Shown piece after piece: positions 2,708 to 29,502 of a stretch of DNA of 64,000 bases. Made by a program: the position numbers and the translations under genes. Source of the stretch: Schizochytrium sp. TIO01 (Eukaryota > Protista > Bigyra: Labyrinthulomycetes); the NCBI GenBank assembly GCA_004764695.1, contig SMSO01000032.1, positions 6,976,483 to 7,040,482 of the forward strand, given 5' to 3'. How positions within the stretch are numbered: the stretch's first letter is position 1; every line of letters begins with the position of its first letter. Below the pieces are notes generated by a model that ran no database searches, was not told the origin of the DNA, and worked only from the letters and a program-made list of their open reading frames with translations.

Positions 2708-5700
2708 TTATACGCTTCCCTGGTTCCGTGATATAACGTATTCAATGGCTTTCTTCACAGCATCCTGAAGCTCTTGTGGTTGGATCTGAATAACGTCAAC
2801 CGTCTTGGCTTCGGCAATAGTTTCAATCCCAACGCGAAGTTTTTCCAGCAGCTGGTCAATATTGCACTCCCCTCCAAGATCTTCCAAATTGACTTCTGTG
2901 TTGCTCTTCAGCAAATTTATCAGGCACGTCAATGGGATTTGACAAGCAGATGGACGGAAAAGTCCAGTTGCATATGGCAGCCTCATTCGACGGAAATCCT
3001 CCCCTGCTTCAGGGGGATAGAAAAGCAGTTTGCTATCCATGTTCAATAAAGCGTCTAGGTCCGAGGCATGTGCCATACCTTTCGCTAGCGCCCATAGTTT
3101 ATGCATTACGAAGCTCCAACCACGCTGCGGATCAGTCTCATATTGAGACACCACTGCAGCAACCTCAGCGAACATGTCCACAGAGGAAACCTCCTTGTCT
3201 AAGAGGGGCGCAAAAACCCCGCGCCACAAGGCAGGAACTCGTTCTGGGCGGTCTAATTTAATAAAACGTAGGGACAGACCATATAAGATCGTACGGATAG
3301 TGCCCTCACGCTTTGCCACGTCGTTTGCACAAGTGGCTCTTAGGCTTCCAGCGTGTTCAGCAGCCCATTCAAGAGCTCTAGCTAGATCATCTTGATGGAC
3401 AAGATTCTTCACCAAATGTGTAATATGAATTGGCTTTTTCTCGCATGTAAGCACTGCCCACACAGCTGAGTAATATGGATTTTCGTGTCTCTCGTTGCCA
3501 TTCTCGACTTCAGGTGCAAAGGCATTACTGCGAATAACATACTTTGCCAATTTCAAGACATCATCTGATAGAGCACTTTGAAGTAACGCAACCAAGTTCT
3601 CTTTACGAAGAGCTCGTAATACCACGGCAGGAGATCGGCAAGCTGACAACAGAAGCACAAACTCGTTCAATGCTACAACCTCGTTGCGTATCCACTCTTT
3701 CTCATAAACATCTTGAAAATTGATGGAATGTCCTCGACGAACAGCATCTGTCATGTCCTCTAGGGATTCGTAACTACCGCCCCAGCTAAATGTTCTACAG
3801 ATCCTCTCACTTGGGGTTATCTGATCGCTAAGCTGGTGCGGAAAGCCTACCTGGTCAATGAACATTGTCCTCAGCACAGTTTCGGGTGACAAAAGATTTG
3901 GGGGAAGCAACGCATCTTTGAATTCTTCATACTTGCTCGCTTCGGTGCACATCATACAACACCACGCGGCAATTTTGATATTAGGTGAGATGTTGTTGGC
4001 CCCCTGTAAATCGCGCTCAACGAAGTCGGGAAAATCACGCCCAAAATCTTGCTTAAACGATAATAACGCAAACTGCACCATAGCAGCCACTGGGGTGTTT
4101 TGGAGGTTCTTTTTTGATGTAAGAGATGAAGAAACCTCAACAATTGCTGTAGCTGGAATGTCCTCTGTGTATTGGCGAGAAGAATTTTTCAGTTCTCGCA
4201 TTATATGCAGATACGCCTCAACAAAATGGCGTGATGTGAGAATGGAAAGACGTGGCATTTTCTTGCACAAAAGCTCAACGAGGTCTTCTGCAGGTGATAT
4301 TGAAGAGTAAGCTTCATCTAGAGTGCTGATCATTCTCAGAGAAATTGACTCACCTCCAAATAAAGTTTGGCATAAATGAAACCATACCTGAATTGCCAAG
4401 CTCGATTTAACGTTCTGTCGCTTCTTGATGACCTCGTTCAACAACTCGCGAGGGAGTCGTGCATTTACTGAATTGCCATTAACACTTTCAAGTAAGGTTA
4501 GATCGGATGCGTCTATTCTGTTGGCAATTAAAAGTGCATATATTCGATCTCGGTTTGTTGCCAGCCAGCTAAAAAGCTCTTTCTTGTGTGCGTTAGAAAG
4601 CATATGATATTCATCAATAACCAAGAACATTTCGCCACCTTCATCAGGTACTTTGCGCATTAAAACAGTGGCAAGAGCAGTATCGACAAGCTCATCGTCA
4701 GACCCATCCACATAGGCAAAGCCGATGTGCTCTTTTGCAAACGTCTTGCCAAGATTTTCTGAGAAGTGAGACTTTCCTGCACCAGGAGGCGAAACTAGTA
4801 GCACAATTGCGGGCTTCTTGGAAGGAGAAAGTATATTATCAATCTGCTCACGATAATCATTCGCCTGAATAGCTTCTTTCGCTAGAAGCCAGCAGGTGTT
4901 GCCAACATCCTGAGCATTCGGTGTCCTTTGCGGAGAAGCGCTTGCGTTATTTTCCTCTTCAAGTGACGCTAGAAATTTTAGATCATGATCTTCATCAACA
5001 GTAACCTCGGCAACCCCCCCTACCTCGCTTTGACGTGCTGGCATAAGAATATTATGCAAATTTATGTCCAGAGAATTCCAAGACATGGAACTCTGTAACC
5101 TAAAAAATAGATTGCTGAAAGCTTCGTCCATCTCGAAAACATGTATGGGACGATTTGCTCGTAAGTCAGGCCGAACCAAATCATGTGAAGATACGAGCAT
5201 TCTTGAAAGGGCTGGAGGTGCTCGCTTTAGAACACACCGGTCTCTGTTCTCCCCAAAATTCCAGGAAGTATCACAATCTTCGATGTAAACAAAGCGCCAA
5301 GGATGATGTTTTGTATACTCAGCAATCCATTTGAGAAGTTGATCGTTGATTGTGGGTAGGCCACGTACCCAAACAAGCCATGTGAATTCGGAAAAACACC
5401 CAATTATCCGCAGGTACATCGATGCGTCATCGCGTGCATTTATCAGACTATCATGACCAAGATCACAGTCAACATAGGTGATGCCATATCGGTCTAGCTC
5501 TTGGCGCTCTTGGCGGCGAACAATATGGACACCATACAGATCATTTTTTCGTTCAATAAACTTGTGTGCGTAAATCGGTAGCGTATATACCTTAACTAGC
5601 TGCCGGCGTACTGGTTCCTCAGAAGGCATAGATGCTGCCACACAATTTGCAATGATCAAGAGGTTTATGTCTTCTGCTTCTAAATCTCCGTCGCCCGATC

Positions 5701-8700: not shown

Positions 8701-11700
8701 CTTGAACTCGTGGAAATGAACTGGTCGAGTCCCAAGGTCTAGGAGCATCCAGCCATGGCGTTATATCACCCTCAAGCTTCTTCAAAACATATTCAATACA
8801 TTTGCGTGGAAGCTCACGGCCAGGTTCTATTCTCAGAGCATATTCACTATATGTGGAATTGTCTTTCTGAGCAAGAATTAAGAGTTTCTCTTTCACAATT
8901 GGTTCGAGGTTTCCGATAAACCGAGATTGCAAGGCATTTAGAGTAGCACCTGGTAGGGTGTGCGGCATCGTGGCCAGAACGGCCAACATTGATAATGGGA
9001 TTTCCGTCTTAATGTTATCGTTTTTGCATGCAGGAGGAAGATCAGAACACACCGTTCTACTGAACAGATCCCAGTTCATTTCTGTGCTATGATTCGGAAG
9101 CAGCAACAAAGGTAGATTATATGTGGGATTTACAGCCCACGCAAACCATGCTAATTCGCATAGGCTCTTTGAAGGAGCGAGTTGCTTAGTTTCAGCAACA
9201 TAGCTCAATATAGCATTCAAGAGAGTCTCTCTAGCGCCATGTGAACTAAAGAAAGCCTTGTTCTCATAGTTTAGGCTTAATTCTTCCTCAACAAACGTTT
9301 TAATGAATATACGCATCAGAATCTTTGAAGATGTGAGAGGAAATTTATTTTGGCTAGTTCCCAGGTCTTCAGTCTTTAGTCTCTGCCTTAACACTGAATA
9401 TACAGCAAACTGGAACGGACCCGACCCAGCTTCGTTCAGCGCATCTTCAAGCGCACCGCGAATATCCGAACTAGCACATGTAACACAAACCCTCAAAGCA
9501 GCGTCTAATCTTGTGACGTCAATACCATCTTCAGTTTCAGCTATTGAAGACAGAAGTTCTAGTAAGAATTTTCCAGGATCATCGTTGTGCTGTGCAGCTT
9601 TAAGAATATATTTGGTGATAAAGGCTGCAAAGCAACTCTCATTTTCCTCTACATATTTTGGAGAGCCAACTGCGATAAACTCTGCCAAGGCTGCAGGTGA
9701 AAAGCGAAGATACCACATATCTTGCTGTGTATCTTGCTTCGCAAACTCTTCAGAACTAGTAATGAGGTCTGAGCTGCCCATAGCCCAATCTCGAAGTGGT
9801 CGAACACAATTTCGAATTACTCCCGCTGTCTCAAGAACGCGATCACGCCAGGACGAGTGTAAGCACAACATGGCAAATGCTGCACCAAATTTAATTTGCT
9901 GAGAGCCCAGAGAATCATTCACAAGTTTCTGTTCGTTTGTGTTGCTTGTAAATATTAGTTCGGCAACATGCGGTTGAGCAATAAGAGCATGAGGTGGAAA
10001 ATCTAAAGACACTAAAGTCTTGATCAGCTTAGTCTTGATCAGCTTCGTCTTGAGGTTATCGCTCTCATTGCCAGATTTGAAGTAAAAATATAGATCAGAT
10101 TTAAGAAAGTCGTTCACAAGCCGAGCGAAATCTTGTTCTTGAGCGTCTATTCCGAATGCAACCTGATGTTTTAGAAGCGACCAAGCAAGCACAGCTCGGC
10201 GATGCAACAACTCCTCGTTGTTCTCCACTGCACTCCCTAGCGAATCTCGAACACAGTCAAGATCAAATGTTAGACGTTCAACCGTCTGAACGTTTAATGG
10301 TAAAGAAGACATTCGTGTCTTACTTAAAGATAAGGCTAACAGTAAGCGCAGTGGCGACTCTTCTAAAAGATGTTGCAGGACCGGAATTGAAACCTCAGGA
10401 GTTCGTGCCCAGGCGCTGTAAACATGATTCCAATCAAGATCCTCACCCCGCAACGCGTTTTGCTCAATGATGTCGCTCAAAGGTGTCATACTGTCTCCAC
10501 GCCCTGGGTCTACAACACGAACTTGACGCCCATCATCTTTGGTTCCAAATTTGCTGCATAATATCTCTCCAGGATTATCAGCGCGTCCAATGTTGAAGGC
10601 ATCTTCGACGCCGCCAAGACATTGCATCTCCGTTTCATGCTTTAGCAAAGTTAAAAATACCTCAAGGCGGGTTTCTTGGGAGGCAAGCATCATGACTGGA
10701 TCTTTGGTGACATCAGAAAAGTGAACAAAGGCTTTCTCTTCTACTGATACACTTACTGGTGACAAGCTATTCTCATCGGAATTCATCAAACTATCCGCCC
10801 CCACCTTAGGCTCTCCAATAAAGATCTCCAGGTATTCGCGAAGAGCCAGTGCTACAAGATCAGAGACAAGAACCGGTTGTTCCTTAGCAAGATCATCATC
10901 AGTGCTCAGCTTTTTTTTGTAAAGAAAGGTCATGAGGTTGTGCAGGATACGCGGGTTGGACGAGGTCCGAACAGCGATCTCAGATAGACATGCTGGTATT
11001 GTGACGGAGCTCTTGCAAAATTCACGGATATCAGCGATGTCCTTTTCTGAGACATAGAAGCCTGGCCCCAGAAGAATACGAAGCCCGAGAATTACGCGCT
11101 GAAGCTCTCTCTCGATAGCCACATCTTTTGGCCAAACTCTGTCCATTCGAACATGCAAAACTCTCAAACTCTCATAAGTTGTCCCCCCTGTAGGCATTGT
11201 AATCTTAATCGAAGTCAAGTCTCGGGAGGCACAGCTGGTGATCAAGAGGAGTGGAATCTTACGAGCAGCACAATGTGTAGCAATCACTTGTAATCTGTCC
11301 CGTGCCAAAAGTTGTGCATGAGAAAGCGCAACAATATCTTCATTTGCGAGTTCGTATTCGTCTTGAACGCTCAGGATCCCTCGAAGCTTTTCTATACAGT
11401 GCGGATCCCGCGCATTGACTAAGTTTATCTGTTTATCGAGGACATCACATAGATTTTCGGCAATGAATTCTGGGTCGTCGGATACTAGCACATGCGTATA
11501 TTGATGCACTGCAGGTTGATCAATTTCTCGCAATCCCCGAAACCACGACTTCAATTCGTCTTTCCACTTTAAAGCACTCTCGGTTCGAGTATGAATTCTT
11601 TTCAATGTTTCGCCCAAAAATCGATTGCTGTTGCGAAGCTGAGTTGAGACAGCTGGTAAAATGCAACCAAATGGGGTTAGCCTATCAATTATGATTACTG

Positions 11701-14551: not shown

Positions 14552-15533
14552 CGTCTAAATAATGAGGGAGAGAACAGGAAGATTTCAAACTTGTTACAGG
14601 CCACCTTAACTAACTAGATAGAAAGGAGGTTTGCTTGCACTTTGAGTTGCAACTTCACAACTGACTAGGTGGTTTTTGTAAAGTGCAGTTGCTCTATAGT
14701 AGATATTCTCAAAATCTGGACGCGTTCGATACAAATGAAGATTTGGATTTGCTAGAGCAGACATTTTAGACTCCTTCACTACATGCCAACATTGGCACCA
14801 AATTTTAGAGAAATTATTCTGTAGCGGCAGTTTCGTTGACCATAGCCTTTTTTAAGTGTAGAGGATGTTTTACCATTGTGCTCGCAAGTCAATATATAAC
14901 TCTTAAATGGTCTTTCTGATTCTAAGCACGGAATGGAGAAGGGGGCAGTGTGGGTTTGCGATTGTACTCATTCCGTTTGCTAAATTTTGAGATCAACGAG
15001 AGAGACTGCAGGTTTACTTTGGTTCACCGTAAAGAAAGCAATCCGTTGGCTGTTTTGGTACTGCGTTGGTGATTATTATCCCGACGGAAGGTAGACCAAC
15101 TCCAAACAACAATGTCGACATCATTAACTAAAGGCACGCTATAAGGTATTATGGAATAGAACTTGTTTTTACGCAGGGGACACCACGATATAACAAACGA
15201 AAGATTACCACTAGCAACAGGTTATTTATACTACAGGTAGGACTCTCTCTGGCTTAACTGCTTTGCATTTGATCTTAGCAGGAAAAATCACTATGGTAGG
15301 AACTCCAATACCAACGTATGATTAAAAAAAGCAGTATAGCAGCTCTGAAACAATGCTATTTCAATAATACATCCAGCAGCTTGCTAATTCGAAATGCTCA
15401 GCGGCGCGACTATATGTTTTTCTGATACCAATAACCAACCTACAATGGCCTACCCGTTTTCCCAAAGATTGCCTTGGTGACCGAATACTTTCAATCAATC
15501 ATGACCATAAAGAATGATCAATCATGACTGACG

Positions 15534-16018
15534 AATAAGGTCAATCAATTAACCCACTAATTGACCATGAATGACTAGTCAGAGCCTGGTGCTACGTTTT
15601 TTCTGACAACCCCTCTCACGGATCAATTGATCTACAAAGAACTAACAAACGTTTATTTGCTTATACTGCAGTTTATTACTCTCAACTGTCTGGATAGGTG
15701 TTTGAATGAATGTTACCAAGCAATCATGACTAAAGAAGGGCATGATTAGTCAGCTAACCTATCAATTAGTCACCATTGACCATCGAAAGCCGGGGTTGGT
15801 TGAAGGTTGGTTAGTTGGTGCCAAGTCAACCTACCTTTTAATCATCCTTGACCATCAGAAGCCATATGCTCATGATCAACAAATAAGGTCAATCAATTAA
15901 CCCACTAATTGACCATAAAAAACTAGTCAGAGCCTGGCGCTACGTTTTTTCGGACCACCCCTCTCGTGGATCAATGGATCTACAAGACGTAACTGGCGTT
16001 TATTTGTTTATACTGCAG
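15534..16018 (+). repeat. Two ~137-bp imperfect direct repeats (15534-15671 and 15882-16018) in the divergent intergenic region, plus shorter related sub-repeats
   Basis: Both copies begin aataaggtcaatcaattaacccactaattgaccat, continue actagtcagagcctgg(t/c)gctacgtttttt and end ttatactgcag. Partial related motifs occur at ~15758-15791, ~15830-15863 and ~16153-16193. Confidence 0.9.
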
Positions 16019-17106: not shown

Positions 17107-20100
17107 ATGGTCTGGGTGATTTTGCCTGGGGCAAGCCTGCCTTCACACGATGATGATGAACTTACTGTGGATTTTGAGAGCGATGATGGTCTTGTGTTGA
17201 CCTCTGAAAAGCCCCGCTATGTAAGCCCTAACTTCGTTGCTGTGGAGTTAGTATTCCCTGCTCAAAATTTTGCCAAGAAATTTGCCAAGAAAGCAAAGAA
17301 TACAATATTGGGATTCTTCAATGGAGGTCCGAGTCATTATGACTGCACGTTTGAGTGTAGTTGGCAGAAGGATCGAGAGGTACGCATATCCATTAACAAA
17401 GATTACATAAAGGGTGACAATTTCCTGTACCTCTTTTGTACTGCTGAGGAACTTGGAGCAGACACCTTTTGTAATGGGTTATCCCAGCTTGGTTTTCAAT
17501 GCTTTCCCAAGCTATTAGCTTTGCAGATTTGCACAAGGGAGAATAACTATGAACCCATCGAACTTATAGAATTGCTTCAGAGTTTAGAACCAGTTCAAAA
17601 CACTTTTCAACTTCCTCCAGATTGGACACTTAACTGTAAACCCCGTGACCTTGCTAATATTTCCACTCGATTGGAAAAACTTGAATGGAGGGCACAAGCT
17701 GAACAAGTGATGAACCTAATCCCGCAAGCTTTACTATCGGAATACCCTTCTACTATGTCCCAGGTCACTGAGAAAGGAATGGAGAGAGATGTCCCTTTTT
17801 ATTACATTAAGAATTGCTTTGTCCGCGCTATCGTGGTCGATCTGGTGTGCTCCTCAGAAGAGCAGGATAGGTTTGCAGATGGCTGTTTGTGCGAAAATTA
17901 TTCCGCCTTTTTTAAAGAGGCATTGGATTTTGCCGGAAATGTAGTGAAAATAGGTCGCACGTTAACATACAAGTCTTGCGAAAAAGCCTCGGTTTTAAGT
18001 ATGCACGGACTTGCAGTACTATGCGTTCTCGATTCAAGTCTTTGCATACCTCTTGAAAATGAGGCGAGCTATAATTGGAAAATACAATCCCAAGGTGATA
18101 TCGATCTTGCTTGCCAAATTCTATCAGAGCTCGCTTCCAGAAAACTTCATAAAGAGAGCTTCGTTAGGATTCTACACCAGCGCCTTGTAGTTTCGAATAG
18201 GTTAGAAGCAATCTTCAAACTTGACTTGAAGCAAGTATCATCAGACAATGAAAGTATCGAAGAAAAAGTTATTGATTTAAAGTTAAATTGTATATCTCCC
18301 GAGGAATTAATGTCAGAGCTATTTCAAGCAGTATCAGAGAGCCAGTTAAAAGAAAATGAATACCTCTTACGATACCAAAAGCTAGTAGACATTGTCATTC
18401 GAGATCAAAGGATGCCTCGAGACCTCCTCTTCAATGCTTTATTCAGGCAATATATCAAGCCAAACAGTGATGTTGATATTAGTGAAGCAGAATCATTAAT
18501 ACAGTTGATTAATATAGGCAGCGTTCACGACCAAATCATAACCTGTGTAAAAGTAACCCAATGGAACATCTTGTGGCCACTACCAACCAAAGCTCAGCAA
18601 AATGAGGGGTTTCTCCTTTTACTCTCACTGGGAAGTCAAGCTGAAATACAAGAAAGCCCTGGGTACATACAATACGCATGCCGACTATGCAGCTTGTATG
18701 ATAAAGACAGGAAAATATTTCGCAGAGACCTTGCGACGGAGACTTTCGATCTCTTAAGGGGTAAAGTCGATGAGATTTTCAAACTTCTTGATCTTTGCAA
18801 AGTACTTATGAAAAGTGCTGAAAGTCGCTCTATCATCACATCAGATAGTGTCGCAAAGATGTTTAAGAAAGCTCAGTATCGTTGCACTTTTGATGAGATC
18901 TCAAAGTGGTGTAATGATTGGGCAAACCCCGCGTCTTTAATGTCTGGCCCGTCATCGAGCGCAGTTCACTTTTGTTTGTACCAAACCTTTGCTCACGGCC
19001 CCGCAAAGGATTTAACAAAAGGCGCACGCAATTTTGGACACACCCTCTCGAAACTCAAGGAGCGCTCCAAACTGATCGGCTTACTGACCACATGGGTTGA
19101 GAAAAACCTTAAGCTTTACCTGCCTGAAACTGCGATCAAAATATTCTTGAAGGAAGCACAATGTAAGAGTAGCTCGAGTGAATACTTTCCCGATTGTCTA
19201 GGCAAATTGATTTTTGACGAAGCTAGTTTGAAGGCGTTTCATCAAATCGATGGAGCTACTCCATCATCGTCTAGCTGGTTTTTAAAAGCAGCCATCGAAG
19301 AAGCAAAGCTTCTGAAGGAAAATCTTAAGAAAGTATTAGAGGATGAACCTAGACATGAGGAATGCGCGACTTTGATTTCTGCAATCCCTGGTAAAGCTAT
19401 CCAGAGAGCATGCAGGCGAGCTCTTGATGTCATAAATGGGGAGGTGAGCTGTTCAATGAGTGACCTGCCTTTTGCAAGAGTTGTCAATGTACAAGAAGAA
19501 AAACGAGCATTAGCGGCGCTATTTTCTGACAGTCAGGATTTTGAAAATCTGCAGAATGCCCCTCAGCAACTCGCAAAACTATCAGCTCTACTGTCAACTA
19601 GCCCTTTAAAACTACTTAACATGCCCGCCGAGATGCACTCAATCCTGGAAGATCTTTCCAAAGACAAAGTGCCCGATGGTGAGATCTCCCGAAAAATGCA
19701 AAGTTGGGTTCGCAAGTACCCATCATCAAATACAGAGCTTTTGTACTTTGGGGAGTCTAGTATTCAAGACTTAATTACAAGCGGAGAGGAGATTCTGGTT
19801 TGTGAAAGCGACACGTTTGACGCTTCAGAATGGTACAAACTGGATTATGTAATTAAACAGCGTGAAGGGATACGGGCTTTATTGGAATTGCGAAAAAAAG
19901 AGGATATCGACGAGTGGAGAAGTAGTCTAGAGAGCTTGAGATCAGCTGCTATTTTTCAGGACAACGTATCAAGCAAAGAAGCAAACTTCCTTTCCGAGGT
20001 TGCTCAGCATCTTGACGGTTTTTTATCTCAGAAACTAGAACATGCCATACAGGATGTCATTTGTTTAGCACGTCTTTTTGCTCGTCCAGATGCACCTAGA

Positions 20101-23100
20101 GTTTCTTTGGTTAGTTTGGAGCCATTACTCAGTAAGATGGACTCAACGCCTTCATCTCTTTTAAGGAAAAATATCGATAATTTGAGTAAAGCATCATTGG
20201 AGCTACGCGTTTCTGTGAGACCAGAGAATCTTCGTCAAAGCGGCTTGTGCAAAGCATACTCTCACCCTTCTGGTGTCTGTATAAAACTTTTTGCAGCAGA
20301 GAAGCACTACTTTAACATTGCAGGTCATAATTTCAAACTCCATACCCTAGATTGCGTTTCCCTGAGAGATTTCATTGTACAATGTTTCAACCAGATTCAA
20401 CTCATGACTGATACAGATGAAGTTAAACGAGATACTCGAACACTCAGGGCCTTTGTTGAGCGATGTGAGCGCATACGCGTTCTTGGCAAAAAGGTTGGGC
20501 GAGCAATGCAGCTTGATGCAACTTTCACTGAAAGTAATTTGAAGTCTTGGGGGGCTGTTTCTATTAGAGATAACGATGTTATCGTGGGTTTTAAAAGGGC
20601 AACTGACCAACAATCTCCAGATATTGACGATGCCCGTGATGTTCTTAACCTCGATCAAATACTGTCCGCCAAAGAAGAAGAACATCGCAATATAATCGAG
20701 AATGCATGCTGGATTCTTCGTGCTGGTCCCCTTTCTTCGCGTTACAACTCAATCAATGATTCTTGGAGAAAGGAACTCGCTAAAGAAGCCCTTGCTTCTG
20801 TGGCAGAGGATTCTAGAAGCAATGCTAAGAAGCGCCTCGAAACACTCTCCCCAAGTGCATCTAGGTTAAACCATACGCCATCAGGCCTTCAAAACATTAT
20901 TCATTATTTCTGCAGTGAAGAAGCCAATAGTCCTCTTTCAAAACGGTCTGGCAGTAACAAGGTGTATGTTGGCGTAATTGATGCATCTCACGTTGGCAAA
21001 ACTCTTAGTTCATTGGTAGCTTGTGCGTTATCCTTGCTCAAGCCTATTAGTATTACTACTACATTTGTCATCGATCACACGTATTCTAACCGTGCTATTT
21101 GCTCCTTAATCACGTGTATCTCTGAGGCTGCGAAAGATGTGCGCTCCGCCTCTTATTGCCTAGGCTCCAGGGCTGGACTTATAATCGTAGGTGCAGACAA
21201 CCTGTCACCAGAACTACTGGAAAATCTTTTTAAAGCCTGTGCAAAGTATTATAAAGCTATTCTCAATGAGTGCGTATCGGCTCCAGTTCCAGCGCTACTC
21301 CTTCTTCTTTCAGCATCTGTAACCACTGACGTTACAGACTTTCCAAAAATTGAAAAAAATCATTATTTGATTCAGGATTTGGATTCTATGGAACCGTATG
21401 CGCCTGAAAATTTAGTGCAGCTGGGTATTGTCTCTGATCTTCATTATAGAGCTTGCCCGTCGAAATTAGGGTCTGCACGCATTGTTGTACGAAAGTCTAT
21501 GACGGTTTCGGAATTTTGTGAAGAAGTGCGATATGCATTGAGCAGGGAGCTTCGGAATTATAACGTAGAGCGTCCACAGCTTATTCTTGATTGCATCGAG
21601 GATCTGGAAGAGATTCTGTGCGTCAGCCTCGGAGGGGCTCTAGTTTCACTTCTACTGACTCGCTGTATCGGGCAAAGTGGTCGTGATGGAGTAACATACA
21701 TCATTCCGAAAGAAATTCTGATTCTTGTTGTACTTGAAGAATCTCAGATCAGCAAATTTCCTCTCCGATGTTGCAGGGTGGAAGACACAGTTGACCGGGG
21801 CTACCTTCATGTAGATCAGAAGGCAGAAGAGATTGCAAAAAGGATTGAAATTCTCTCTGAAAAAGCGCGAGACCAAAAAATAGATGATTCTGATGTTCTG
21901 AGGGCCATGGATTTCGCCGGTCCCATTCGTGAAAAATTATTCCCGTTCGTATATTCTGAAGGAACGTTGAAGGCGATTGCGGCAGCACTGCGTTGCATTC
22001 CTCCAATGCCGCAAAGTCAATCTTGGCGAAAACCTGTCATTTTCTCGGGTGATACAGGAACAGGGAAAACCTTTCTTTGCCTCAAACTTGTCCAGCTCTT
22101 ACGACTCTCGCCGTACTGGAAAATCGATGATGAAACATACGCAGTGGCATCATTTTCAGCCGCGTATGGTCATGCTCAGATTCAGTATTTACAAGATAAA
22201 ATTTACAAGCTTACACGCACTGAAAACAGGGGTGCATGGAGTTCCTTCTGTATTCTTGACGAGGTTACAGCAAGCCCTGCTCAATCTTCTCTTGAAGCTC
22301 TTTTGTCCAAACCTTTTAAGCAGCATGGAGAACGATCTATTGAAGAATATGATCGCCCAGCAACTCTTTTTCTAGCAACGTGCAACCCAGATCCAGAGCG
22401 GGATGACGTGTTCAAATTAGCCAAATCGTTGCAAGCCGTGAGTATTCCACTTGACAAACCTGATCCAAAATCCGGAGTTTCATTTTTGCTTACAAAATTT
22501 CAGAATGTGATGCCCAATGAAGACCCTGAACTGGCCAAACATTTCTTTGAAGCAGCGAAGCAGGCATTTGAGACTCAGGAACACGTCTATGGAGTTCTTT
22601 CGTTCCGTGATATGTCCAAAAGCGCAGAGATCGCTAAACTTCTCTATAATTCCGAATTTATTGATGACCTGTTCACCAAATCTAGTTCAGGTGAGAATGG
22701 CCTTTTTTGGGAAGCCGCAACAAAATGGAAGCTAACACTGTTACTGACGCTCTATGTAGTCATAGGTATGAGAACAGTCCCGCGATCTTCATTCTTTGAT
22801 GCTGTTAAAGCGCACTTTCCCAAGGCGGAAGACTGGTTTCATCTAGCTCAGGAGACTATATGCATTGCGTACGAGCTCGCCGACACAATTTTTCCGACGA
22901 GGGCTTTGAAAGACAATTTGTTAGCTCTAACCGTTGCAATAAGAGCGCGCCAACCAGTACTTTTGCTTGGCAATGACGGAATGTCAAAAAGCCTTTCTAT
23001 AAAATTGATTCAACGTCACATGCGAGGTAAATTTGCTAGCTCTGAGTTTCTGAGGAAGCACCTGCCACGCATTCAAACCTTCGCACTACAGTTCTCACCT

Positions 23101-26100
23101 CGAACTTCCGCGAGTTTAGTTAGGAACTTTGGTCGCGCACTCACAGAGCTGAGCAGTGAAAATAAGACTGTCGAAACAAAAGAAAAAATTGTTGACAACA
23201 TGAGGACTGTTCCATGTGCTGTGATAGAAGAGCTTTCGATGGCCCAGCCTGGCCCATCCGGCCCACTTCGAGCGCTTCATGGATTGCTAGACAACCATCA
23301 GATGCGGGAACGAGAGCCTTTGGACGAGAACTCAGGATCTGGCTCGAATAAATTCGTGTTTCTGTCTACCTCTAATTTTATCCCTGAACGAGGCCAAGAC
23401 ATTCCAATTGGCCGGGCTCTTGCTAATCGAATGCTTGTACTTGTTCACGAAGCGCAGGCCGTTGAGGAACTTACTGCAATGACCATGAAAGCTGCAACCC
23501 AAGACCAGCCTGAAATCGAACGGTTGATAGAAGAACTCAGTAATCAGATTCCTGTGCGAAGCCTTTTGGCATTTGCGCGTGGGTGCAGCTTCCTTCTGAA
23601 AAATCCAACATTGACCTTTGACAAGCCTGTCATGCTAGCACGCGCAGCATATCTGCAGTGTACCACCGAAAAAGGATCAATAGACCTCTGGTCGAAATTT
23701 GGATGTAGTAGTCAGGATACTCTAGATCCTGTGCCACTTATTGATTTGCTTGTGTGTGCTGATTCTCCTTCACGACCACTTCTGTTTTTTTATGACAAGC
23801 TGGGAGACGTGGAAAGTTGGCTCGATTTACTTAGCAATCAGTTTTATCCGCGGCTTAGATACTGTAGGGCTTGGATCTATGACCTTGTCTGGGTCCAACC
23901 CTCACCCTCTCTAATTAGTATCTTGAAAAAATACTCATTCATATTCATAGGAGACCTGGCATGCCTATCAAAAGTTGTGTCAAGGTCAGATCCGATCTTT
24001 CAGGAGATTGAGCAGGCCCTTATCAAATACGAGAAAATGCTCTTGGATCATGATACACCTATTTTACAATCATGGGAGAGACTACAGCCCGAGACTTTGT
24101 CCATGTTGATCGAACCGTTTGTCAACTCGTTGAAGATGCTAAATGCAGATTTGAGGGATAAATTGATTGCTGCTTTTGATCGCAAAAAATTGAAAAGGAT
24201 CAAGGATCTGGCTTCTCTCTCTCTGGCCGAGTTTTTGCAACCGAGGTGGAGAGAGGACATGTACATGCTAACCCCGGAATTCGCTCAAAAACTCTTGCAA
24301 CCTCTCAAAGAAAATAATGAAGATGATCACGGCAGATATGTCTTGGATTGGCTACGTACAACACATAGTTTTTCAGAGATTGCTGAGAATTTGGAAACAT
24401 TCGATATTTCTGCATCGCCCGAAGTTATTTACTCAGGCGTTAAAGACGAGGCCTCTGTGTCATTTGATCAAGAGCCCCTTATGCAGGTGAAGACAGCAAT
24501 GCAAGAGGGGCGCACCGCAGTTCTAATCAACCCAGACTCATACATTGATTGTCTTCATGCTCTGATGAATGATATTCCAGATGCGTCTTTTTCAACATTG
24601 CAAATGAGAAATTCTTTTGAGACAGTTTCCATCGAGCGTGGTGCACGTTTAGTACTTTTCATGGACAGGGAAAAGGCCAAGCATCTTCACTCGTCTGTGG
24701 TGTCTCGAGTTTCAATAGTCAATTCTGGCTACCCTGTTAAATGTTGTGTCTCCTATGATTATACAACAGTGCCTGGAACAGCATATGAGCAGCTTGCTTC
24801 AAGTCTCGTCGCAGCTGAGAAAGACCATGCTGACGATTCTTACGAATGGCCCGATGCTACCAGTCAAGAGCTTTTGCAAGCTGTAGACTTTACATCTGGG
24901 TTTAATCGATTTCATGAACTGAAGCGAATTACGCTTGTGGCTTCTTCGAGAGCTTTGGAATGCTCTGAGTTAGTGCCCGAATCAGTAACTTTTACTGCAT
25001 CCAATTTCGATTCATCTATATCGCTCCTGTGTGCGCTTCGAAGTCACATGGAGAACAGAAATCCAGGAAACATAGTGTTAGACTTGATCAATCTACAGAA
25101 GGACGCAGTTCTAGATATTTTAATTCGCCTGGGGTTTTCAGGGATGCACTTAGGTCTTGACTCTTCTTTTGCACGCTTGAGGGAAGATAGAGATCTTTCG
25201 GAGCTAATCAGAGATTTTCTCTGGGGACATCGGCGACATATTTTTATAATGGTAAATCCCTTCGTATATACCTATTGCACTCCAGGACCTACTCTTATCA
25301 ACGATATACAACTGTTGGAGGTACGAGACTGCAATACAGACTTGACAGAGAGGAATGATTCGTGGCCGAGCCTTTTAGTCATAGCAAATGATTTGAGTCT
25401 TCAGTGCTTGAAAGCACCTGCAAAAGAGCTCATTTGTGAGTTCCTCAGGAACAGCGACATCGAAAACAACCTTGCTGCTGAGACTATTTTTGATTTACTT
25501 TGGGACGAAATCTTTCTCTCAGTTTTCCCCCTTCGTTCAGAAACCTTGCGCGTTGGGACGTGGAAGCATATCTGTCAGAATGCTTTGAAGTCTAAACTTA
25601 GTCTACGTACACTCGTTCTAAGCTATGTTCGTGCATGGCTTTTCCGTAGCTTACATTTTCTTTTGCAGGAAATTGGAAGTAAAAATTCTATTATAAACAG
25701 TAAGGAACTCGAAGGCGAGACGGACTGGAACTCTGACAAAAAAATAGCTTCATCTATACTACAATCACGCTTCTATTCCTTCCTGGGGCATGTCCATCCC
25801 ATCGACGAAAAGCAAATTAATGAGTTCTCCGCGTCATGGCAGTCATCCCAAGTGTCACAGCTACTTTTTGCACAAACCTCTACCCGTTTTCCTTTCACGC
25901 ATAGTTTTTACAACGCTGCGTTAGCTGAAGGCAATTATTTCGAAAGCGACTTTCCAAGCTTACAAGGCACCCTGCATCCTGATTTAGCACTTCGGCTCCT
26001 GGAAAGCTTATTGTTATTTCATGGTCAAACACTAGGTGTTTTCTTGGGTAATATACATATCGATAAGACGGTAGTTGTCAATCTGAAGACCATCAAGGCA

Positions 26101-29100
26101 GTTGTAAAGTTCTTTGGCATTTACTTGAATGATCTGTTATTGTTTGCTTTGGTCAAACAGAAACATGAAAACCAAAACCAAAGCGAAACAATCTTGAACT
26201 TCTGCAAGGACTCATCACTGAATGTTTCGTACCAGGTTCTTTGCGAATTTAAGGTATCTTATGAGGTGTCATTATTTCGGAGAGTTCTGCAAAATATCGA
26301 AGCTCGCAAGGTACCCAATTTAGAAAGCTCAACTGAGGGGTACTGCAAAAGAGTGGAAGCAATTAAAAGTCTGAAGACTCTGTTTGACATGTGGCTTATG
26401 GTTGAGTCGTCAACAAAAAATCAGAAAGTTGATAACCGGGGGGTTAGGCAAAGTTTGAAACTAGCTCACCAGATTATCTCAGGTGAAAGATGCAGATATG
26501 ATGGTGAATTAAATATCGACACAATGGTGATATTCCTTGAAGCGAATCAAGTAAATCTCCAAATAAAAAGTATTGCGGAAGCATTAGCTATGATTCACAG
26601 AAAAAAGGCCACCCCTTATCATTTCGCCCGCTTGATGATGCTCCAGTCTCCCTTGATCAATCTAGGAGCAAGGGAAAGAGCAACATATATTCTTGAGTTA
26701 GTTTCATGTTTAGAGAGCGAATTGTTGAAGTCTTCAGATTTTAGGGAAGCTCTCAGGCTTGTTGCGCACGACGTAGTTAATCACGATAATGCATTATCAC
26801 TCCGGTTGCCCCTGCGTGCTTCAAACTCTGAAATGTTCTGTTTACCTGGATTGAACCAAAAGAACCAAAAGAGCCAAAGCAAACAAAATACCAAAGAAGC
26901 TTCGACATTATTTCGCGTTTCTTTTGGTGTGCCTGCTATCAGAATGATTGTTAAAATCTTCAAAGCTGAGCGAAGGTTGCCAAAAGGTACAACACTTGCG
27001 TTGCTTTTAGATGAAGAGGAGGTAGCTACCGCTCCCTTACGCAATTTCCTAATTAGATCTTTGGTAAAGGAGTTTGGAGAAGAGCATCTTGCATCTAAAG
27101 CTATGCCGCTGCTACAGAACACGTTGAAACCAACGCAACATGGCCACACAGGTTCTGTGCAAGTGGTACCACATAATATGGAGCCATGTTTCAAACCATA
27201 CCTCGCTCCTCCGCCGGATGATATCGATAAGGTTTTTTCCTTGGTTCCTGGTTTTGAAGGTAATGGAAAAAAGGGCCTATGGAGTGCATTGGGGCTTACG
27301 GGTGAGGTTGTCGAGCTCATTCCAAATATGTCAATGTGCGAAGCACCAGCGTTGCTATGGAACGCTTTAATTTGTCCAGGCGGCTGCCTTTGTCAGAATT
27401 TAAAAGAAACATCAGGAGGATTTTCGTTACCTGCGTATTCAGAAACTCTCCAATCGTCTATTTTACCAGGGATCATGCTTAGCAACATTGAACTTATAGA
27501 ACAAATCGCTGGCGTATCTTCTGTAAACAAGTGCAAATGCGGTGAGTATTACGGTATTGGAGATTGTGGAGGGCCTATGGAGATATCCAGATGTCCAAAT
27601 TGCCATCGGAAAATTGGAGGGGAGATGCACGAGTTAGTTGAAGACAGTCATCTCATTATTTTTGATGGTCAGCCGATCCTGGGCATTCCACATGACCTCG
27701 AAATACCACTTGTGCCTCACCATACTGAACGAGATTTACAGCCCGTCGAGTATCGCATCTTGTGGCTGTTGATGCTTTTCCCTTTGATAAACTCACAATA
27801 CTGTGACAATCGTGAAGCTCGCGCAAAGCAAATGGCAACCGCTTGGGGGGCATTCAAAAATACCGTAGGGTTATCAACTGATATAGAAGCAAGCGCCGCA
27901 CTTGTTACATTAATGGTAGGCGCAGCGAAATTTCAAGACAACCCATTGTCACTTGCAGACAAGATTTTTATAAAGCCTGGCAATGAGACCTCTGCTGGGC
28001 GATTTCGTGGAGGTCTAGAACGCGAATTCTCCAAAAGGCTTCGTCAGATTTGCGACAAAGAGAACATTAAAGAAACTCTAGTTACATTTGCCGAGAGCTT
28101 TATGAAGCGTGTCAGTGAAAGCGAGCGACAACACCCTCTTGTGCGTCTTCGAGAAACGATAATTCGGGAGCGCGAAAGGATGGAACCTGAGCAAACGAGA
28201 AGGGAAATATTACCAGATGTTTGTATACTTACTGAACCACATGTAACGTCTGATCTTCGTCAATTTATATGGAAGACTCGTGCGGTATCAGTTACGTATC
28301 CCATGATTGTACTTGCTGGGTTTGCAAATGAATGGGACGGAGAAACTTGTCAGTCCTTATTCCAAATGATGAACCAGAATCTCTGGGCTCAGGAAATCCC
28401 TCGTGTTACTAATTGCCTGGATGTGCTTCTGAAAGGAGCTCGTCTTCTGCAAAAATGCCCTGTGTCAACAAAGTATTCTGCCATGCAAATGGTGGAGAGT
28501 GTCTTGGACGAAAAGTTACGAAAATCATTTGTGCAGGCATGGGAACAGTGCCGTCTTGATCGTCAGTTTGAATGCCAGCAGGTTTCGGATCTTGGCGAGC
28601 TTCAACTCCTACCAGCTGAAGATGTTTTACTAGTGACGGGAAGGGCATCTCGTCTGCACATCATGCTTGGAGGATTGATTGATGCTCATAACAAGATGGT
28701 GCGATGGGTGCGGCACCAATTCCCCCTTGAGAAGACAGAACGCGTTGACGTCTTTGATTTGGAGACTCTAACACCATACTTGATACCGTGGATGCTTTTG
28801 AGATCGAAACTAGAAATAGCGAATCAATTTTCTCCAAACAACCACACTACATTGAACAAGGCCGTTTTAAACCTGCTGAAGGATTTGAAGCTTTGTGAAT
28901 TTGATCTGGAATCATCTTGGCCAATGGCCCCATCATATGTTCAAACTGCTATTGTGCGTGTCCAGGGCATTCCACAAGGAAATCGGAAACTCCCGGATGA
29001 CCTCAAGGAGATAATTGTAAATCTAAAGACCATTGAGCAGAGACGCGAATTACTTGAAGCTGCCCAGCGAGAGGCAGCTAGGGTTGATGCAGGAATTCGC

Positions 29101-29502
29101 CAGGGAAAACATGTAACAGATGAACGGACGTTATCCTATAGCTCTGACGACAAACCAAATAGTCATACCTTTCTCAAAGTGAAGGTGTGGCAGCTGGAGA
29201 ATATTCAAAAATATTTGCTAGAGGAAATTCAAGAGAAACCGCATGATATTCTTGGTCCACAATTCCGAGAAAAGGACAGCAACACATATCCTAAACTGAA
29301 CTCTACGGTGCTTCATGCGATGAGTGTAATGTGCTTAGAAATAGCATCCTTTGCTGGTAGCATGGATACCCCAGTGAAAGATCTCTTTGAACATGCGGAA
29401 TCATTTGGGGAGCAAAGTATAGAAGTCCAGGATGGGATTCGATCTTGCAATCTTGCAAGCAAATATTTGTACTATTTCCTTGAGTCGTACCATTCTTTTT
29501 AA
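17107..29502 (+). CDS. RNF213 (mysterin)-like giant AAA+ ATPase / RZ-finger E3 ubiquitin ligase, ~4,131 aa
   Basis: First ATG is at 17107 (the ORF track starts at an upstream TTG). RNF213-type motifs occur in the expected order. AAA3: PVIFSGDTGTGKT (Walker A 22048-22071), ILDEV, FLATCNP, LSFRDM. AAA4: ALKDNL...PVLLLGNDGMSKSLS (22969-22992), LQFSP, VIEELSMA, PLRALHGLLD, FVFLSTSN, ANR. AAA5: VKTAMQEGRTAVLINPDSYIDCLHALMN. RZ finger CKCGEYYGIGDCGGPMEISRCPNCHRKIGGEMH (27532-27630), followed by ERDLQPVEYRILWLL and the CTD-like motifs FVQAWE and LIDAHN. Confidence 0.92.
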   Translation: MVWVILPGASLPSHDDDELTVDFESDDGLVLTSEKPRYVSPNFVAVELVFPAQNFAKKFAKKAKNTILGFFNGGPSHYDCTFECSWQKDREVRISINKDYIKGDNFLYLFCTAEELGADTFCNGLSQLGFQCFPKLLALQICTRENNYEPIELIELLQSLEPVQNTFQLPPDWTLNCKPRDLANISTRLEKLEWRAQAEQVMNLIPQALLSEYPSTMSQVTEKGMERDVPFYYIKNCFVRAIVVDLVCSSEEQDRFADGCLCENYSAFFKEALDFAGNVVKIGRTLTYKSCEKASVLSMHGLAVLCVLDSSLCIPLENEASYNWKIQSQGDIDLACQILSELASRKLHKESFVRILHQRLVVSNRLEAIFKLDLKQVSSDNESIEEKVIDLKLNCISPEELMSELFQAVSESQLKENEYLLRYQKLVDIVIRDQRMPRDLLFNALFRQYIKPNSDVDISEAESLIQLINIGSVHDQIITCVKVTQWNILWPLPTKAQQNEGFLLLLSLGSQAEIQESPGYIQYACRLCSLYDKDRKIFRRDLATETFDLLRGKVDEIFKLLDLCKVLMKSAESRSIITSDSVAKMFKKAQYRCTFDEISKWCNDWANPASLMSGPSSSAVHFCLYQTFAHGPAKDLTKGARNFGHTLSKLKERSKLIGLLTTWVEKNLKLYLPETAIKIFLKEAQCKSSSSEYFPDCLGKLIFDEASLKAFHQIDGATPSSSSWFLKAAIEEAKLLKENLKKVLEDEPRHEECATLISAIPGKAIQRACRRALDVINGEVSCSMSDLPFARVVNVQEEKRALAALFSDSQDFENLQNAPQQLAKLSALLSTSPLKLLNMPAEMHSILEDLSKDKVPDGEISRKMQSWVRKYPSSNTELLYFGESSIQDLITSGEEILVCESDTFDASEWYKLDYVIKQREGIRALLELRKKEDIDEWRSSLESLRSAAIFQDNVSSKEANFLSEVAQHLDGFLSQKLEHAIQDVICLARLFARPDAPRVSLVSLEPLLSKMDSTPSSLLRKNIDNLSKASLELRVSVRPENLRQSGLCKAYSHPSGVCIKLFAAEKHYFNIAGHNFKLHTLDCVSLRDFIVQCFNQIQLMTDTDEVKRDTRTLRAFVERCERIRVLGKKVGRAMQLDATFTESNLKSWGAVSIRDNDVIVGFKRATDQQSPDIDDARDVLNLDQILSAKEEEHRNIIENACWILRAGPLSSRYNSINDSWRKELAKEALASVAEDSRSNAKKRLETLSPSASRLNHTPSGLQNIIHYFCSEEANSPLSKRSGSNKVYVGVIDASHVGKTLSSLVACALSLLKPISITTTFVIDHTYSNRAICSLITCISEAAKDVRSASYCLGSRAGLIIVGADNLSPELLENLFKACAKYYKAILNECVSAPVPALLLLLSASVTTDVTDFPKIEKNHYLIQDLDSMEPYAPENLVQLGIVSDLHYRACPSKLGSARIVVRKSMTVSEFCEEVRYALSRELRNYNVERPQLILDCIEDLEEILCVSLGGALVSLLLTRCIGQSGRDGVTYIIPKEILILVVLEESQISKFPLRCCRVEDTVDRGYLHVDQKAEEIAKRIEILSEKARDQKIDDSDVLRAMDFAGPIREKLFPFVYSEGTLKAIAAALRCIPPMPQSQSWRKPVIFSGDTGTGKTFLCLKLVQLLRLSPYWKIDDETYAVASFSAAYGHAQIQYLQDKIYKLTRTENRGAWSSFCILDEVTASPAQSSLEALLSKPFKQHGERSIEEYDRPATLFLATCNPDPERDDVFKLAKSLQAVSIPLDKPDPKSGVSFLLTKFQNVMPNEDPELAKHFFEAAKQAFETQEHVYGVLSFRDMSKSAEIAKLLYNSEFIDDLFTKSSSGENGLFWEAATKWKLTLLLTLYVVIGMRTVPRSSFFDAVKAHFPKAEDWFHLAQETICIAYELADTIFPTRALKDNLLALTVAIRARQPVLLLGNDGMSKSLSIKLIQRHMRGKFASSEFLRKHLPRIQTFALQFSPRTSASLVRNFGRALTELSSENKTVETKEKIVDNMRTVPCAVIEELSMAQPGPSGPLRALHGLLDNHQMREREPLDENSGSGSNKFVFLSTSNFIPERGQDIPIGRALANRMLVLVHEAQAVEELTAMTMKAATQDQPEIERLIEELSNQIPVRSLLAFARGCSFLLKNPTLTFDKPVMLARAAYLQCTTEKGSIDLWSKFGCSSQDTLDPVPLIDLLVCADSPSRPLLFFYDKLGDVESWLDLLSNQFYPRLRYCRAWIYDLVWVQPSPSLISILKKYSFIFIGDLACLSKVVSRSDPIFQEIEQALIKYEKMLLDHDTPILQSWERLQPETLSMLIEPFVNSLKMLNADLRDKLIAAFDRKKLKRIKDLASLSLAEFLQPRWREDMYMLTPEFAQKLLQPLKENNEDDHGRYVLDWLRTTHSFSEIAENLETFDISASPEVIYSGVKDEASVSFDQEPLMQVKTAMQEGRTAVLINPDSYIDCLHALMNDIPDASFSTLQMRNSFETVSIERGARLVLFMDREKAKHLHSSVVSRVSIVNSGYPVKCCVSYDYTTVPGTAYEQLASSLVAAEKDHADDSYEWPDATSQELLQAVDFTSGFNRFHELKRITLVASSRALECSELVPESVTFTASNFDSSISLLCALRSHMENRNPGNIVLDLINLQKDAVLDILIRLGFSGMHLGLDSSFARLREDRDLSELIRDFLWGHRRHIFIMVNPFVYTYCTPGPTLINDIQLLEVRDCNTDLTERNDSWPSLLVIANDLSLQCLKAPAKELICEFLRNSDIENNLAAETIFDLLWDEIFLSVFPLRSETLRVGTWKHICQNALKSKLSLRTLVLSYVRAWLFRSLHFLLQEIGSKNSIINSKELEGETDWNSDKKIASSILQSRFYSFLGHVHPIDEKQINEFSASWQSSQVSQLLFAQTSTRFPFTHSFYNAALAEGNYFESDFPSLQGTLHPDLALRLLESLLLFHGQTLGVFLGNIHIDKTVVVNLKTIKAVVKFFGIYLNDLLLFALVKQKHENQNQSETILNFCKDSSLNVSYQVLCEFKVSYEVSLFRRVLQNIEARKVPNLESSTEGYCKRVEAIKSLKTLFDMWLMVESSTKNQKVDNRGVRQSLKLAHQIISGERCRYDGELNIDTMVIFLEANQVNLQIKSIAEALAMIHRKKATPYHFARLMMLQSPLINLGARERATYILELVSCLESELLKSSDFREALRLVAHDVVNHDNALSLRLPLRASNSEMFCLPGLNQKNQKSQSKQNTKEASTLFRVSFGVPAIRMIVKIFKAERRLPKGTTLALLLDEEEVATAPLRNFLIRSLVKEFGEEHLASKAMPLLQNTLKPTQHGHTGSVQVVPHNMEPCFKPYLAPPPDDIDKVFSLVPGFEGNGKKGLWSALGLTGEVVELIPNMSMCEAPALLWNALICPGGCLCQNLKETSGGFSLPAYSETLQSSILPGIMLSNIELIEQIAGVSSVNKCKCGEYYGIGDCGGPMEISRCPNCHRKIGGEMHELVEDSHLIIFDGQPILGIPHDLEIPLVPHHTERDLQPVEYRILWLLMLFPLINSQYCDNREARAKQMATAWGAFKNTVGLSTDIEASAALVTLMVGAAKFQDNPLSLADKIFIKPGNETSAGRFRGGLEREFSKRLRQICDKENIKETLVTFAESFMKRVSESERQHPLVRLRETIIRERERMEPEQTRREILPDVCILTEPHVTSDLRQFIWKTRAVSVTYPMIVLAGFANEWDGETCQSLFQMMNQNLWAQEIPRVTNCLDVLLKGARLLQKCPVSTKYSAMQMVESVLDEKLRKSFVQAWEQCRLDRQFECQQVSDLGELQLLPAEDVLLVTGRASRLHIMLGGLIDAHNKMVRWVRHQFPLEKTERVDVFDLETLTPYLIPWMLLRSKLEIANQFSPNNHTTLNKAVLNLLKDLKLCEFDLESSWPMAPSYVQTAIVRVQGIPQGNRKLPDDLKEIIVNLKTIEQRRELLEAAQREAARVDAGIRQGKHVTDERTLSYSSDDKPNSHTFLKVKVWQLENIQKYLLEEIQEKPHDILGPQFREKDSNTYPKLNSTVLHAMSVMCLEIASFAGSMDTPVKDLFEHAESFGEQSIEVQDGIRSCNLASKYLYYFLESYHSF

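Follow-up and report, generated by a model that had tools for sequence, protein, structure and literature searches.

A head-to-head pair of giant genes in Schizochytrium sp. TIO01, encoding an RNF213-like protein and a member of an unnamed AAA+ family, has an ancient paralogous pair in the same genome

We analyzed a stretch of 64,000 nucleotides from the marine thraustochytrid protist Schizochytrium sp. TIO01 (GenBank assembly GCA_004764695.1, contig SMSO01000032.1, positions 6,976,483 to 7,040,482; referred to here as the window), in which two giant genes point away from each other. One encodes P1, a protein of 3,947 amino acids (aa), and the other encodes P2, an RNF213-like protein of 4,131 aa. 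This two-gene unit exists in two ancient paralogous copies, of which one lies in the window and the other, located on another contig, consists of the paralogues P1' and P2'. We estimate a probability of about 0.5 that the unit was duplicated whole, with both genes kept twice, and that the RNF213-type P2 and the AAA+ protein P1 work in one pathway, each P1 with its own P2.

The original prediction for this DNA had described two uninterrupted open reading frames (ORFs) that diverge from a region of about 2.5 kb, and this arrangement was confirmed, with the following coordinates.

2708..14551, minus strand: P1, an uninterrupted intronless ORF with an ATG start, 3,947 aa; belongs to a family of giant AAA+ proteins that is pan-eukaryotic and unnamed
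14552..17106, no strand: the spacer between the start codons, 2,555 bp, 38.6% GC; both 5' leaders and the promoter region
17107..29502, plus strand: P2, an uninterrupted intronless ORF, 4,131 aa from the first ATG; RNF213 family, without a RING

The open frame of P2 begins at a TTG (17086, 4,138 aa), and the use of the first ATG (17107, 4,131 aa) as its start is backed by a 98%-identical protein of 4,129 aa in another assembly. The spacer (14552-17106) contains no ORF of 100 aa or more, and a search of it against Rfam gave no match.

The assembly used for searches within the genome comprises 64 Mb in 37 contigs, with the window pair on contig C31. Its six-frame translation was searched with three queries of 1,000 aa, taken from the N-terminus of P1, the C-terminus of P1, and the center of P2. 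Each query recovered exactly one further locus, on contig C24 in all cases.

C24:166543-178579, minus strand: P1', the P1 paralogue (six-frame search)
C24:180210-192496, plus strand: P2', the RNF213-like paralogue (six-frame search)

These two genes also stand head to head, across a spacer of 1,630 bp, and the genome contains two RZ-type zinc fingers, one in each pair. P1 and P1' are 42-52% identical, and P2 and P2' are 28-32% identical. In a tree of the P1 family, P1 is sister to P1' plus a Hondaea protein with 100% support, and the path from P1 to P1' (0.85 changes per column) compared with the path from P1' to the Hondaea protein (0.18) indicates that the duplication is far older than the genus split between the latter two.

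The C24 pair is flanked by an Arc1p/tRNA-binding gene, a TRAF-type zinc-finger gene, and ORFs without an assigned family, and the window pair by an ORF without an assigned family and by papain-type protease, BRCT, Gaa1, and MYB genes; a tblastx comparison between the window and C24 flanks gave no match. Because there are two divergent pairs of old paralogues in unrelated surroundings, we infer that the pair was copied and kept as a unit. Because the flanks are unrelated and neither gene stands alone anywhere in the genome, the unit of inheritance is exactly the divergent pair. The earlier proposal of a two-gene module is supported by linkage within this one genome, as the sole other copies form a second divergent pair. 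This twice-kept pairing is without a described counterpart and rests on one genome.

In this assembly, the C24 pair (C24:166543-192496) is interrupted, with P1' in four frames (739, 939, 2,083, and 250 aa) and P2' in two (1,581 and 2,492 aa). Uninterrupted C24 versions with 98-100% identity were found in other assemblies (P0002, 4,011 aa, and P0005, 4,095 aa; also P0009 and P0010). The junctions between the frames are not homopolymers, and no break interrupts the window pair over its 24 kb of coding DNA; either the strain carries real pseudogenes on C24, or the assembly is locally wrong there.

On the downstream side of P1', at a distance of about 3.4 kb, a gene at C24:161390-163165 (minus strand; L009:6390-8165) encodes a 591-aa protein with four TRAF-type zinc fingers (3e-29). 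TRAF domains are signaling adaptors in animal immunity. One paper reports TRAF3 as a target of RNF213 (PMC12251097). The presence of this gene near P1' may be a coincidence.

P2 is a RING-less, RZ-only relative of RNF213, with an RZ finger, an AAA_5 module, a stretch homologous to AAA4, and a pair of P-loops that mirrors the one in animal RNF213. These features bear out the view of P2 as an RNF213-like protein in which intact and degenerate P-loops are mixed (GDTGTGKT with FCILDE and GNDGMSKS with AVIEE).

22033..22404, plus strand: AAA module, Pfam AAA_5, 24.1 bits (cut-off 22); positional counterpart of RNF213 AAA3
22048-22071, plus strand: Walker A motif GDTGTGKT; animal RNF213 has GETGCGKT at the equivalent place
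22246-22263, plus strand: Walker B motif FCILDE in the AAA_5 module
22594..23304, plus strand: AAA4-homologous stretch (profile against PDB), with Walker B AVIEE
22969-22992, plus strand: P-loop motif GNDGMSKS; the animal RNF213 counterpart is GKPG[ST]SKS
27508..27648, plus strand: RZ-type zinc finger, Pfam PF20173, 2.2e-13, 50.1 bits (cut-off 27)

The two P-loops lie about 310 aa apart, like GETGCGKT and GKPG[ST]SKS of fish and mussel RNF213. When a profile of P2 and its relatives was compared with PDB, residues 1830-2066 of P2 aligned to residues 2673-2907 of human RNF213, which correspond to AAA4 (E 5e-13), and RNF213 was the only match when solved structures were searched with P2 by phmmer (3e-12). 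The RZ finger, which scored 57.8 bits at the P2 site in a six-frame search of the genome, aligned collinearly to residues 4139-4183 of RNF213 chain 9jw1_A, which form its RZ finger. No RING was matched by Pfam in P2, and a regular expression for the RING, positive in both animal RNF213 sequences used as controls (P0006 and P0007), was negative in P2, its strain variant P0004, and its paralogue P0005. Because the RING of mammalian RNF213 is reported to be dispensable for RZ-dependent activity, we still count P2 in the family despite the missing RING. With the two nucleotide-binding AAA modules and the RZ finger of the RNF213 family but no RING, P2 adds a new variant to this known family, in a lineage where it was not expected.

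P1 was less easily placed by sequence searches. Pfam returned AAA_16 below the cut-off only and no NACHT, NB-ARC, AAA_5, or VWA domain, searches of PDB sequences with P1 or with a P1-family profile gave no match, and a search of the Atlas with P1 gave generic AAA leads only (0.86 at most). An AlphaFold2 model of P1 aa 2748-3947 (predicted local distance difference test score (pLDDT) 84.1, predicted template-modeling score 0.80) and comparisons of family profiles define the following parts of the protein.

9437..12592, minus strand: N-unit, aa 654-1705; older degenerate copy of the C-unit (hhalign), with a degenerate AAA-like stretch at about aa 995-1106
2744..6169, minus strand: C-unit, aa 2795-3936; the most conserved part of the family, with a degenerate AAA-like module, then an intact AAA+ module, then a helical C-terminal region
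5198..5578, minus strand: block I core, aa 2992-3118; an alpha/beta fold of AAA-like type that lacks a P-loop
4211..4867, minus strand: intact AAA+ module, aa 3229-3447 (VIA-align fold match)
4769..4792, minus strand: Walker A motif SPPGAGKS, aa 3254-3261; the sole intact nucleotide site
4610..4627, minus strand: Walker B motif FLVIDE, aa 3309-3314

With VIA-align, the best match of the intact AAA+ module was an RFC small subunit (9peo_C; Z 15.4, root-mean-square deviation (rmsd) 4.3, 184 residues aligned), and p97 D1 followed within 1.5 Z of it (Z 14). Across 12 family members, S3254, P3256, G3257, G3259, and K3260 of Walker A are invariant, and D3313 and E3314 of Walker B are nearly so. The modeled ASCE fold, which includes a helical lid and both Walker motifs, places P1 in the AAA+ superfamily, and the original prediction of an AAA+-type giant without a named family therefore holds, given this fold match and the empty Pfam and PDB sequence searches.

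Two candidate identities of P1 were rejected. A STAND/NLR (nucleotide-binding leucine-rich repeat) sensor was rejected because no NACHT or NB-ARC domain was found by Pfam and because NLRP9, Avs3, and SAMD9 rank below classic AAA+ proteins with low template-modeling scores. A midasin/AAA-VWA machine was ruled out by the missing VWA and AAA_5 matches.

The region that precedes the intact module, block I, is likely rather than certain to be a P-loop-less AAA-like module, as its match scores are middling. Folded alone, it reached a pLDDT of 85.1, and its best 50 matches in VIA-wide were all AAA+ modules (Z 8.1-5.9), headed by dynein 9dzy_B (rmsd 3.5, 108 aligned). Foldseek returned weak rows of P-loop folds (E 0.012 or worse) that include LAP1, LULL1, and the AAA-like domain of Sir3. 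Residues F3053, D3070, K3074, W3075, E3078, E3091, N3098, E3101, R3103, D3104, and R3105 of block I are invariant in the 12 members.

Comparison of sub-alignments of the family by hhalign aligned aa 654-1705 with aa 2795-3936 (probability 95.7%, E 9.6e-9, 904 columns) and, weakly, the intact AAA block with aa 995-1106 (probability 28%, E 6e-4). From this unit-to-unit alignment and the weak match of the AAA block, P1 was duplicated internally long ago, the two units being offset by about 2,140 aa. It has about four AAA-like modules in all, and only the final one is intact. In each unit, an AAA-like module that lacks a P-loop is followed by an AAA module and this by a helical region. A BLASTP self-comparison of P1 showed no repeat, and the duplication is visible only with family profiles. 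The mix of intact and degenerate modules that had been proposed for P1 thus takes the form of one intact site accompanied by degenerate AAA-like modules that are seen only by fold and profile comparison.

An HMMER search with P1 aa 2748-3947 found 243 relatives at E ≤0.001 among 1.84 billion representative proteins, many of them 3,100-4,900 aa long. The lineage placement of the family rests on 20 clusters whose source was looked up; hosts include thraustochytrids, Symbiodinium, Amoebophrya, the choanoflagellates Monosiga, Salpingoeca, and Barroeca, Bodo saltans, and Kipferlia bialata, a spread over stramenopiles, alveolates, choanoflagellates, kinetoplastids, and metamonads that takes in at least six eukaryotic lineages. 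Its members are annotated as hypothetical or are mis-named (PAT23 for one Symbiodinium protein). The 12 full-length members align end to end, Pfam AAA or AAA_22 is found in 6-7 of 12 relatives, and a C-terminal VWA domain is present in 4 of the 12 members and absent from P1 itself. It had been considered that P1 might prove to be a conserved single-copy housekeeping protein; the family is indeed ancient and widespread, but it is patchy and has two copies here. In a literature search, neither protist relatives of RNF213 nor the P1 family turned up in any paper, and the latter is an undescribed family within the AAA+ superfamily.

Full-length relatives of P1 were found at 98% and 44% identity, and the closest named relative is a protein of Hondaea fermentalgiana. 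This protein (GBG31366.1, P0003; gene model "Rab-like protein 2A") is the orthologue of P1' on C24, with 76-79% identity. Its model seems to have been joined to the small-GTPase gene that lies downstream, and it is missing several stretches within the protein, Walker B among them.

In a metagenome scan, 26 loci with P1 homologues were obtained, and only one of them, L023 (metagenome contig Ga0105055_10000656), reaches upstream of the homologue. This locus encodes an intronless P1 homologue of 3,700 aa at 3215-14317 that is 23% identical to P1 (called as 3,645 aa, P0182). A divergent open frame of at least 1,106 aa (L023:1-3318, minus strand) runs off the fetched DNA, and the two starts are about 100 bp apart. 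The first 1,106 aa of this neighbor have no Pfam domain, no relation to the P2 family by hhalign, and no PDB match, and its Atlas search gave helical-repeat leads only (0.82 at most); the N-terminal 1,600 aa of P2 are just as bare of recognizable features. When the 26 loci were searched by tblastn with P2, P0005, and animal RNF213, no RNF213-like sequence was found, upstream DNA being present only in L023.

Both P1 and P2 are probably transcribed, because probable transcript contigs extend over the two genes and leave mid-spacer DNA uncovered. Sixteen of the 17 public runs listed hold the stretch or part of it, and three assemblies of 21-40 Mb that are probable transcriptomes by their size relative to the 64-Mb genome (X1, X2, and X4) were compared with a DNA assembly (X11) over positions 13000-18999. 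One 13,155-nt X1 contig covers the whole P1 gene, and the P1-side contigs end in the spacer at 15137 (X4), 15241 (X2), and 15563 (X1). The P2 contigs are short and shallow, and on this side they start at 16315 or 16906 (X2) and at 17297 (X4). The mid-spacer is bare in X2 and X4, with about 0.75-2.2 kb left uncovered by the probable transcript contigs, and X11 has DNA depth in every 200-bp bin of the spacer. Going by the probable transcript contigs, the 5' leader of P1 measures at least 586 nt and possibly about 1 kb (window 14552-15563). No evidence was found for a compact bidirectional promoter shared by the two genes, as the uncovered DNA lies between long leaders and the two spacers are without a common motif. 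One further element was found in the spacer.

15474..16190, no strand: local repeat of about 348 bp in two to three copies, 80-89% identity (D1, 116 nt at 89%, spacing 348; D2-D4)

This repeat, which was found at no other place in the genome, lies in the part of the mid-spacer left uncovered by X2 and X4. It may serve as a regulatory array, and the contig breaks seen at 15539-15563 and at 15887-15911 are explained by it.

Between this assembly and another, the P1 sequences differ by about 2%, as do the P2 sequences. The differences in P1 fall mostly within aa 1250-2750, with only two beyond aa 3000, and in contigs over its N-terminus there are 2 non-synonymous and 5 synonymous differences, which points to purifying selection. 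In P2, 55 of the 79 differences from P0004 (98% identical) fall within aa 500-750 and aa 3250-4000 (window positions of about 18600-19350 and 26850-29100), the latter being the E3/RZ side, and the AAA core is almost unchanged. The N-terminus of P2 shows 10 non-synonymous and 5 synonymous differences at a depth of 6-8, where clusters may be errors. These counts hint at a faster change in P2 than in P1 and prove nothing. In one P1 contig, the 1.55 kb that is coding has seven strain differences, and the 1-kb leader has none.

The impression that both giants are richer in A/T-ending codons than the neighboring ORF 1134-2234, BRCT, and MYB genes was upheld by counting. The GC content at third codon positions (GC3) is 0.396 for P1 and 0.402 for P2, compared with 0.676 for ORF 1134-2234, 0.583 for the BRCT gene, and 0.543 for the MYB gene, but it is not unique to the pair, as the papain (0.419) and Gaa1 (0.421) neighbors are nearly as low. 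Since low GC3 is common to some neighbors, it is no mark of the pair as foreign, and it probably reflects weak codon bias rather than foreign origin. The papain-family cysteine protease gene (29876-31336, minus strand), which has an I29 propeptide (3.4e-69), is convergent to the 3' end of P2. Beyond the 3' end of P1, two ORFs overlap on opposite strands within 1089-2234, one at 1134-2234 (plus strand, 366 aa, GC3 0.68) and one at 1089-2045 (minus strand, 318 aa, GC3 0.58); Pfam found no domain in either.

From the retention of both genes in both copies through a divergence that erased all else, P1 and P2 most likely belong to one pathway, each P1 with its own P2, and we take this retention as moderate evidence for such a joint function. 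Several observations weigh against it. A single block duplication of about 27 kb makes a second pair without selection, and only 1.6-2.5 kb of spacer must stay unbroken. The C24 pair has frame breaks in this assembly. The window and C24 spacers share no motif beyond chance (18 common 10-mers, compared with 11.3 ± 4.5 in shuffles). The contig depths suggest unequal RNA levels for P1 and P2, depth being a poor measure of these, and the RNA type of X1, X2, and X4 is only a guess. A comparison of the P1 and P2 families by hhalign showed no relation, so that the two proteins are not detectable paralogues. No Hondaea orthologue of the RNF213-like partner was found in a search limited by lengths and broken gene models. 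There is also no animal among the 20 P1-family clusters looked up, though animal genomes have RNF213, and the partnership is thus not universal. A rival account is that P1 and P2 are neighbors by descent only, with P1 performing an old RNF213-independent task (such as midasin-like ATP-driven assembly or removal), P2 being an unrelated ligase, and one block duplication having copied both. This is possible, and it gains from the P1 family being ancient, collinear across distant eukaryotes, and annotated as hypothetical throughout, as well as from the lack of an animal among the clusters, of a motif common to the spacers, and of a relation between the families, and from the differing contig depths, although we lean away from it, since both genes have been retained in both copies down to 28-52% identity with no unpaired copy in 64 Mb, all other traces of paralogy around the pairs are gone, and the P1 homologue of L023 likewise has a big divergent neighbor.

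Two narrower accounts assign the pair a specific task. A sensor/executor immune pair, in which P1 would sense or scaffold on an intracellular bacterium or virus and the RZ-only P2 would ubiquitylate the invader, seems improbable. Passages of two papers report that mammalian RNF213 restricts diverse pathogens and that its RZ finger is needed for the ubiquitylation of lipopolysaccharide (PMC11549300, PMC12440826), and known viruses of thraustochytrids are mentioned in a passage of another (PMC4512727). The clustering of strain differences in P2 and the excess of non-synonymous ones at its N-terminus would suit such a pair, but these low-depth clusters may be contig errors; the lack of a detected Hondaea orthologue of the window pair may mean presence/absence variation. 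PADLOC gave nothing beyond a P-loop-level match, the P1 ATPase is of the clamp-loader/classic AAA+ type and not STAND/NLR, and the P1 C-unit is strongly conserved between strains. The analogy to plant NLR pairs that had been drawn for this locus is thus positional only, the fold of P1 being closest to clamp-loader and classic AAA+ proteins, with STAND proteins lower. The least probable account is a module at lipid droplets or organelle surfaces, with P2 and P1 acting on lipid droplets or damaged organelles in oil-storing protists. Mammalian RNF213, also called mysterin, has been reported to bind and stabilize lipid droplets. It also ubiquitylates damaged mitochondria, as stated in a passage of a preprint (bioRxiv 10.64898/2026.09.21.752888), and thraustochytrids store large amounts of lipid according to a passage of a further paper (PMC10686087). 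Both genes are present in probable transcriptomes of ordinary cultures from three studies, but neither the P1 nor the P2 sequence holds a pointer to lipid binding.

ATP binding in the AAA core of P2 would switch on RZ-finger-dependent ubiquitin transfer, by analogy to mammalian RNF213, for which the gating of RZ-dependent ubiquitin transfer by a nucleotide-binding AAA core has been shown. P1 could be an ATP-driven remodeling or scaffolding partner. The degenerate module next to its single active site may complete or regulate this site through the invariant Arg/Asp cluster, in the way that LAP1 and LULL1 act on torsin and that neighboring modules do in dynein. Because relatives of P1 end in a VWA domain, the ancestral protein may have gripped and pulled a target in a midasin-like or MoxR-like manner, and because P1 has lost this domain, either P2 or a different part of P1 may have taken over contact with the target. 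Possible targets are an intracellular microbe or virus, lipid droplets, or other organelle surfaces. A bolder proposal is that P1-family giants and RING-less RNF213-like ligases form an obligate co-evolving machine in which every P1 paralogue has a ligase of its own, with the AAA+ scaffold delivering or exposing targets for RZ ubiquitylation as part of an ancient surveillance that predates animal RNF213 immunity; we regard it as rather doubtful.

In humans, RNF213 is known both as a disease gene (moyamoya) and as an antimicrobial ligase of broad range, the origin, partners, and target choice of which are poorly understood. The presence of a RING-less, RZ-only RNF213 relative in a stramenopile shows that the AAA-core-plus-RZ design is much older than animals. 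The P1 family, in turn, is an unnamed pan-eukaryotic family of 3,100-4,900-aa proteins without a solved structure, a Pfam model, or an assigned function. If the joint function of P1 and P2 is true, their linked, twice-retained partnership would provide a concrete candidate for an RNF213 co-factor in a culturable protist.

Compared with animal RNF213, P2 has the same giant single chain (about 4,100-5,200 aa), the same order of GxTGxGKT and then GxxGxSKS about 310-350 aa further on, each with Walker B motifs, the same homology to AAA4 (E 5e-13), and a collinear RZ finger about 1,500 aa downstream. It differs in that P2 and P2' are without a RING, P2 is about 1,000 aa shorter, and only its AAA core and RZ finger are recognizable by sequence; its host is a stramenopile protist, and its gene is paired with a P1-family gene.

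The AAA+ module of P1 has its best structural matches in RFC small subunits (Z 15.4) and in p97 D1 (Z 14), each aligned over about 185-195 residues, with a P-loop of the GPPGxGKT type (SPPGAGKS) and an hhhhDE Walker B, whereas identity is only 13-16%, the module is embedded in a 3,947-aa chain, and no clamp-loader collar or partner subunits like those of RFC were recognized. In block I, as in LAP1/LULL1 with torsin and in the inactive modules of dynein, a P-loop-less AAA-like domain that carries an invariant Arg (R3103 and R3105 in block I) adjoins an active AAA site; the fold scores that relate block I to LAP1, LULL1, Sir3, and dynein are middling only (Z 8 or less; Foldseek E 0.012 or worse).

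With midasin/Rea1 and the MoxR-VWA machines, the P1 family has in common very large proteins with AAA+ modules, some degenerate, and a C-terminal VWA/MIDAS-type domain (4 of 12 members), a combination of features that suggests an ATP-driven pull on a bound target. Unlike midasin, P1 has no VWA domain, matches neither AAA_5 nor midasin in Pfam, and resembles no solved structure by sequence, and its roughly four AAA-like modules, one of them intact, come from internal duplication, with no six-module ring recognized. The plant NLR pairs RGA4/RGA5 and RRS1/RPS4 differ from P1/P2 in that here there is no STAND/NB-ARC domain or integrated decoy and one partner is an E3 ligase, but in both systems two large nucleotide-binding proteins are encoded by divergent genes that are inherited as a unit.

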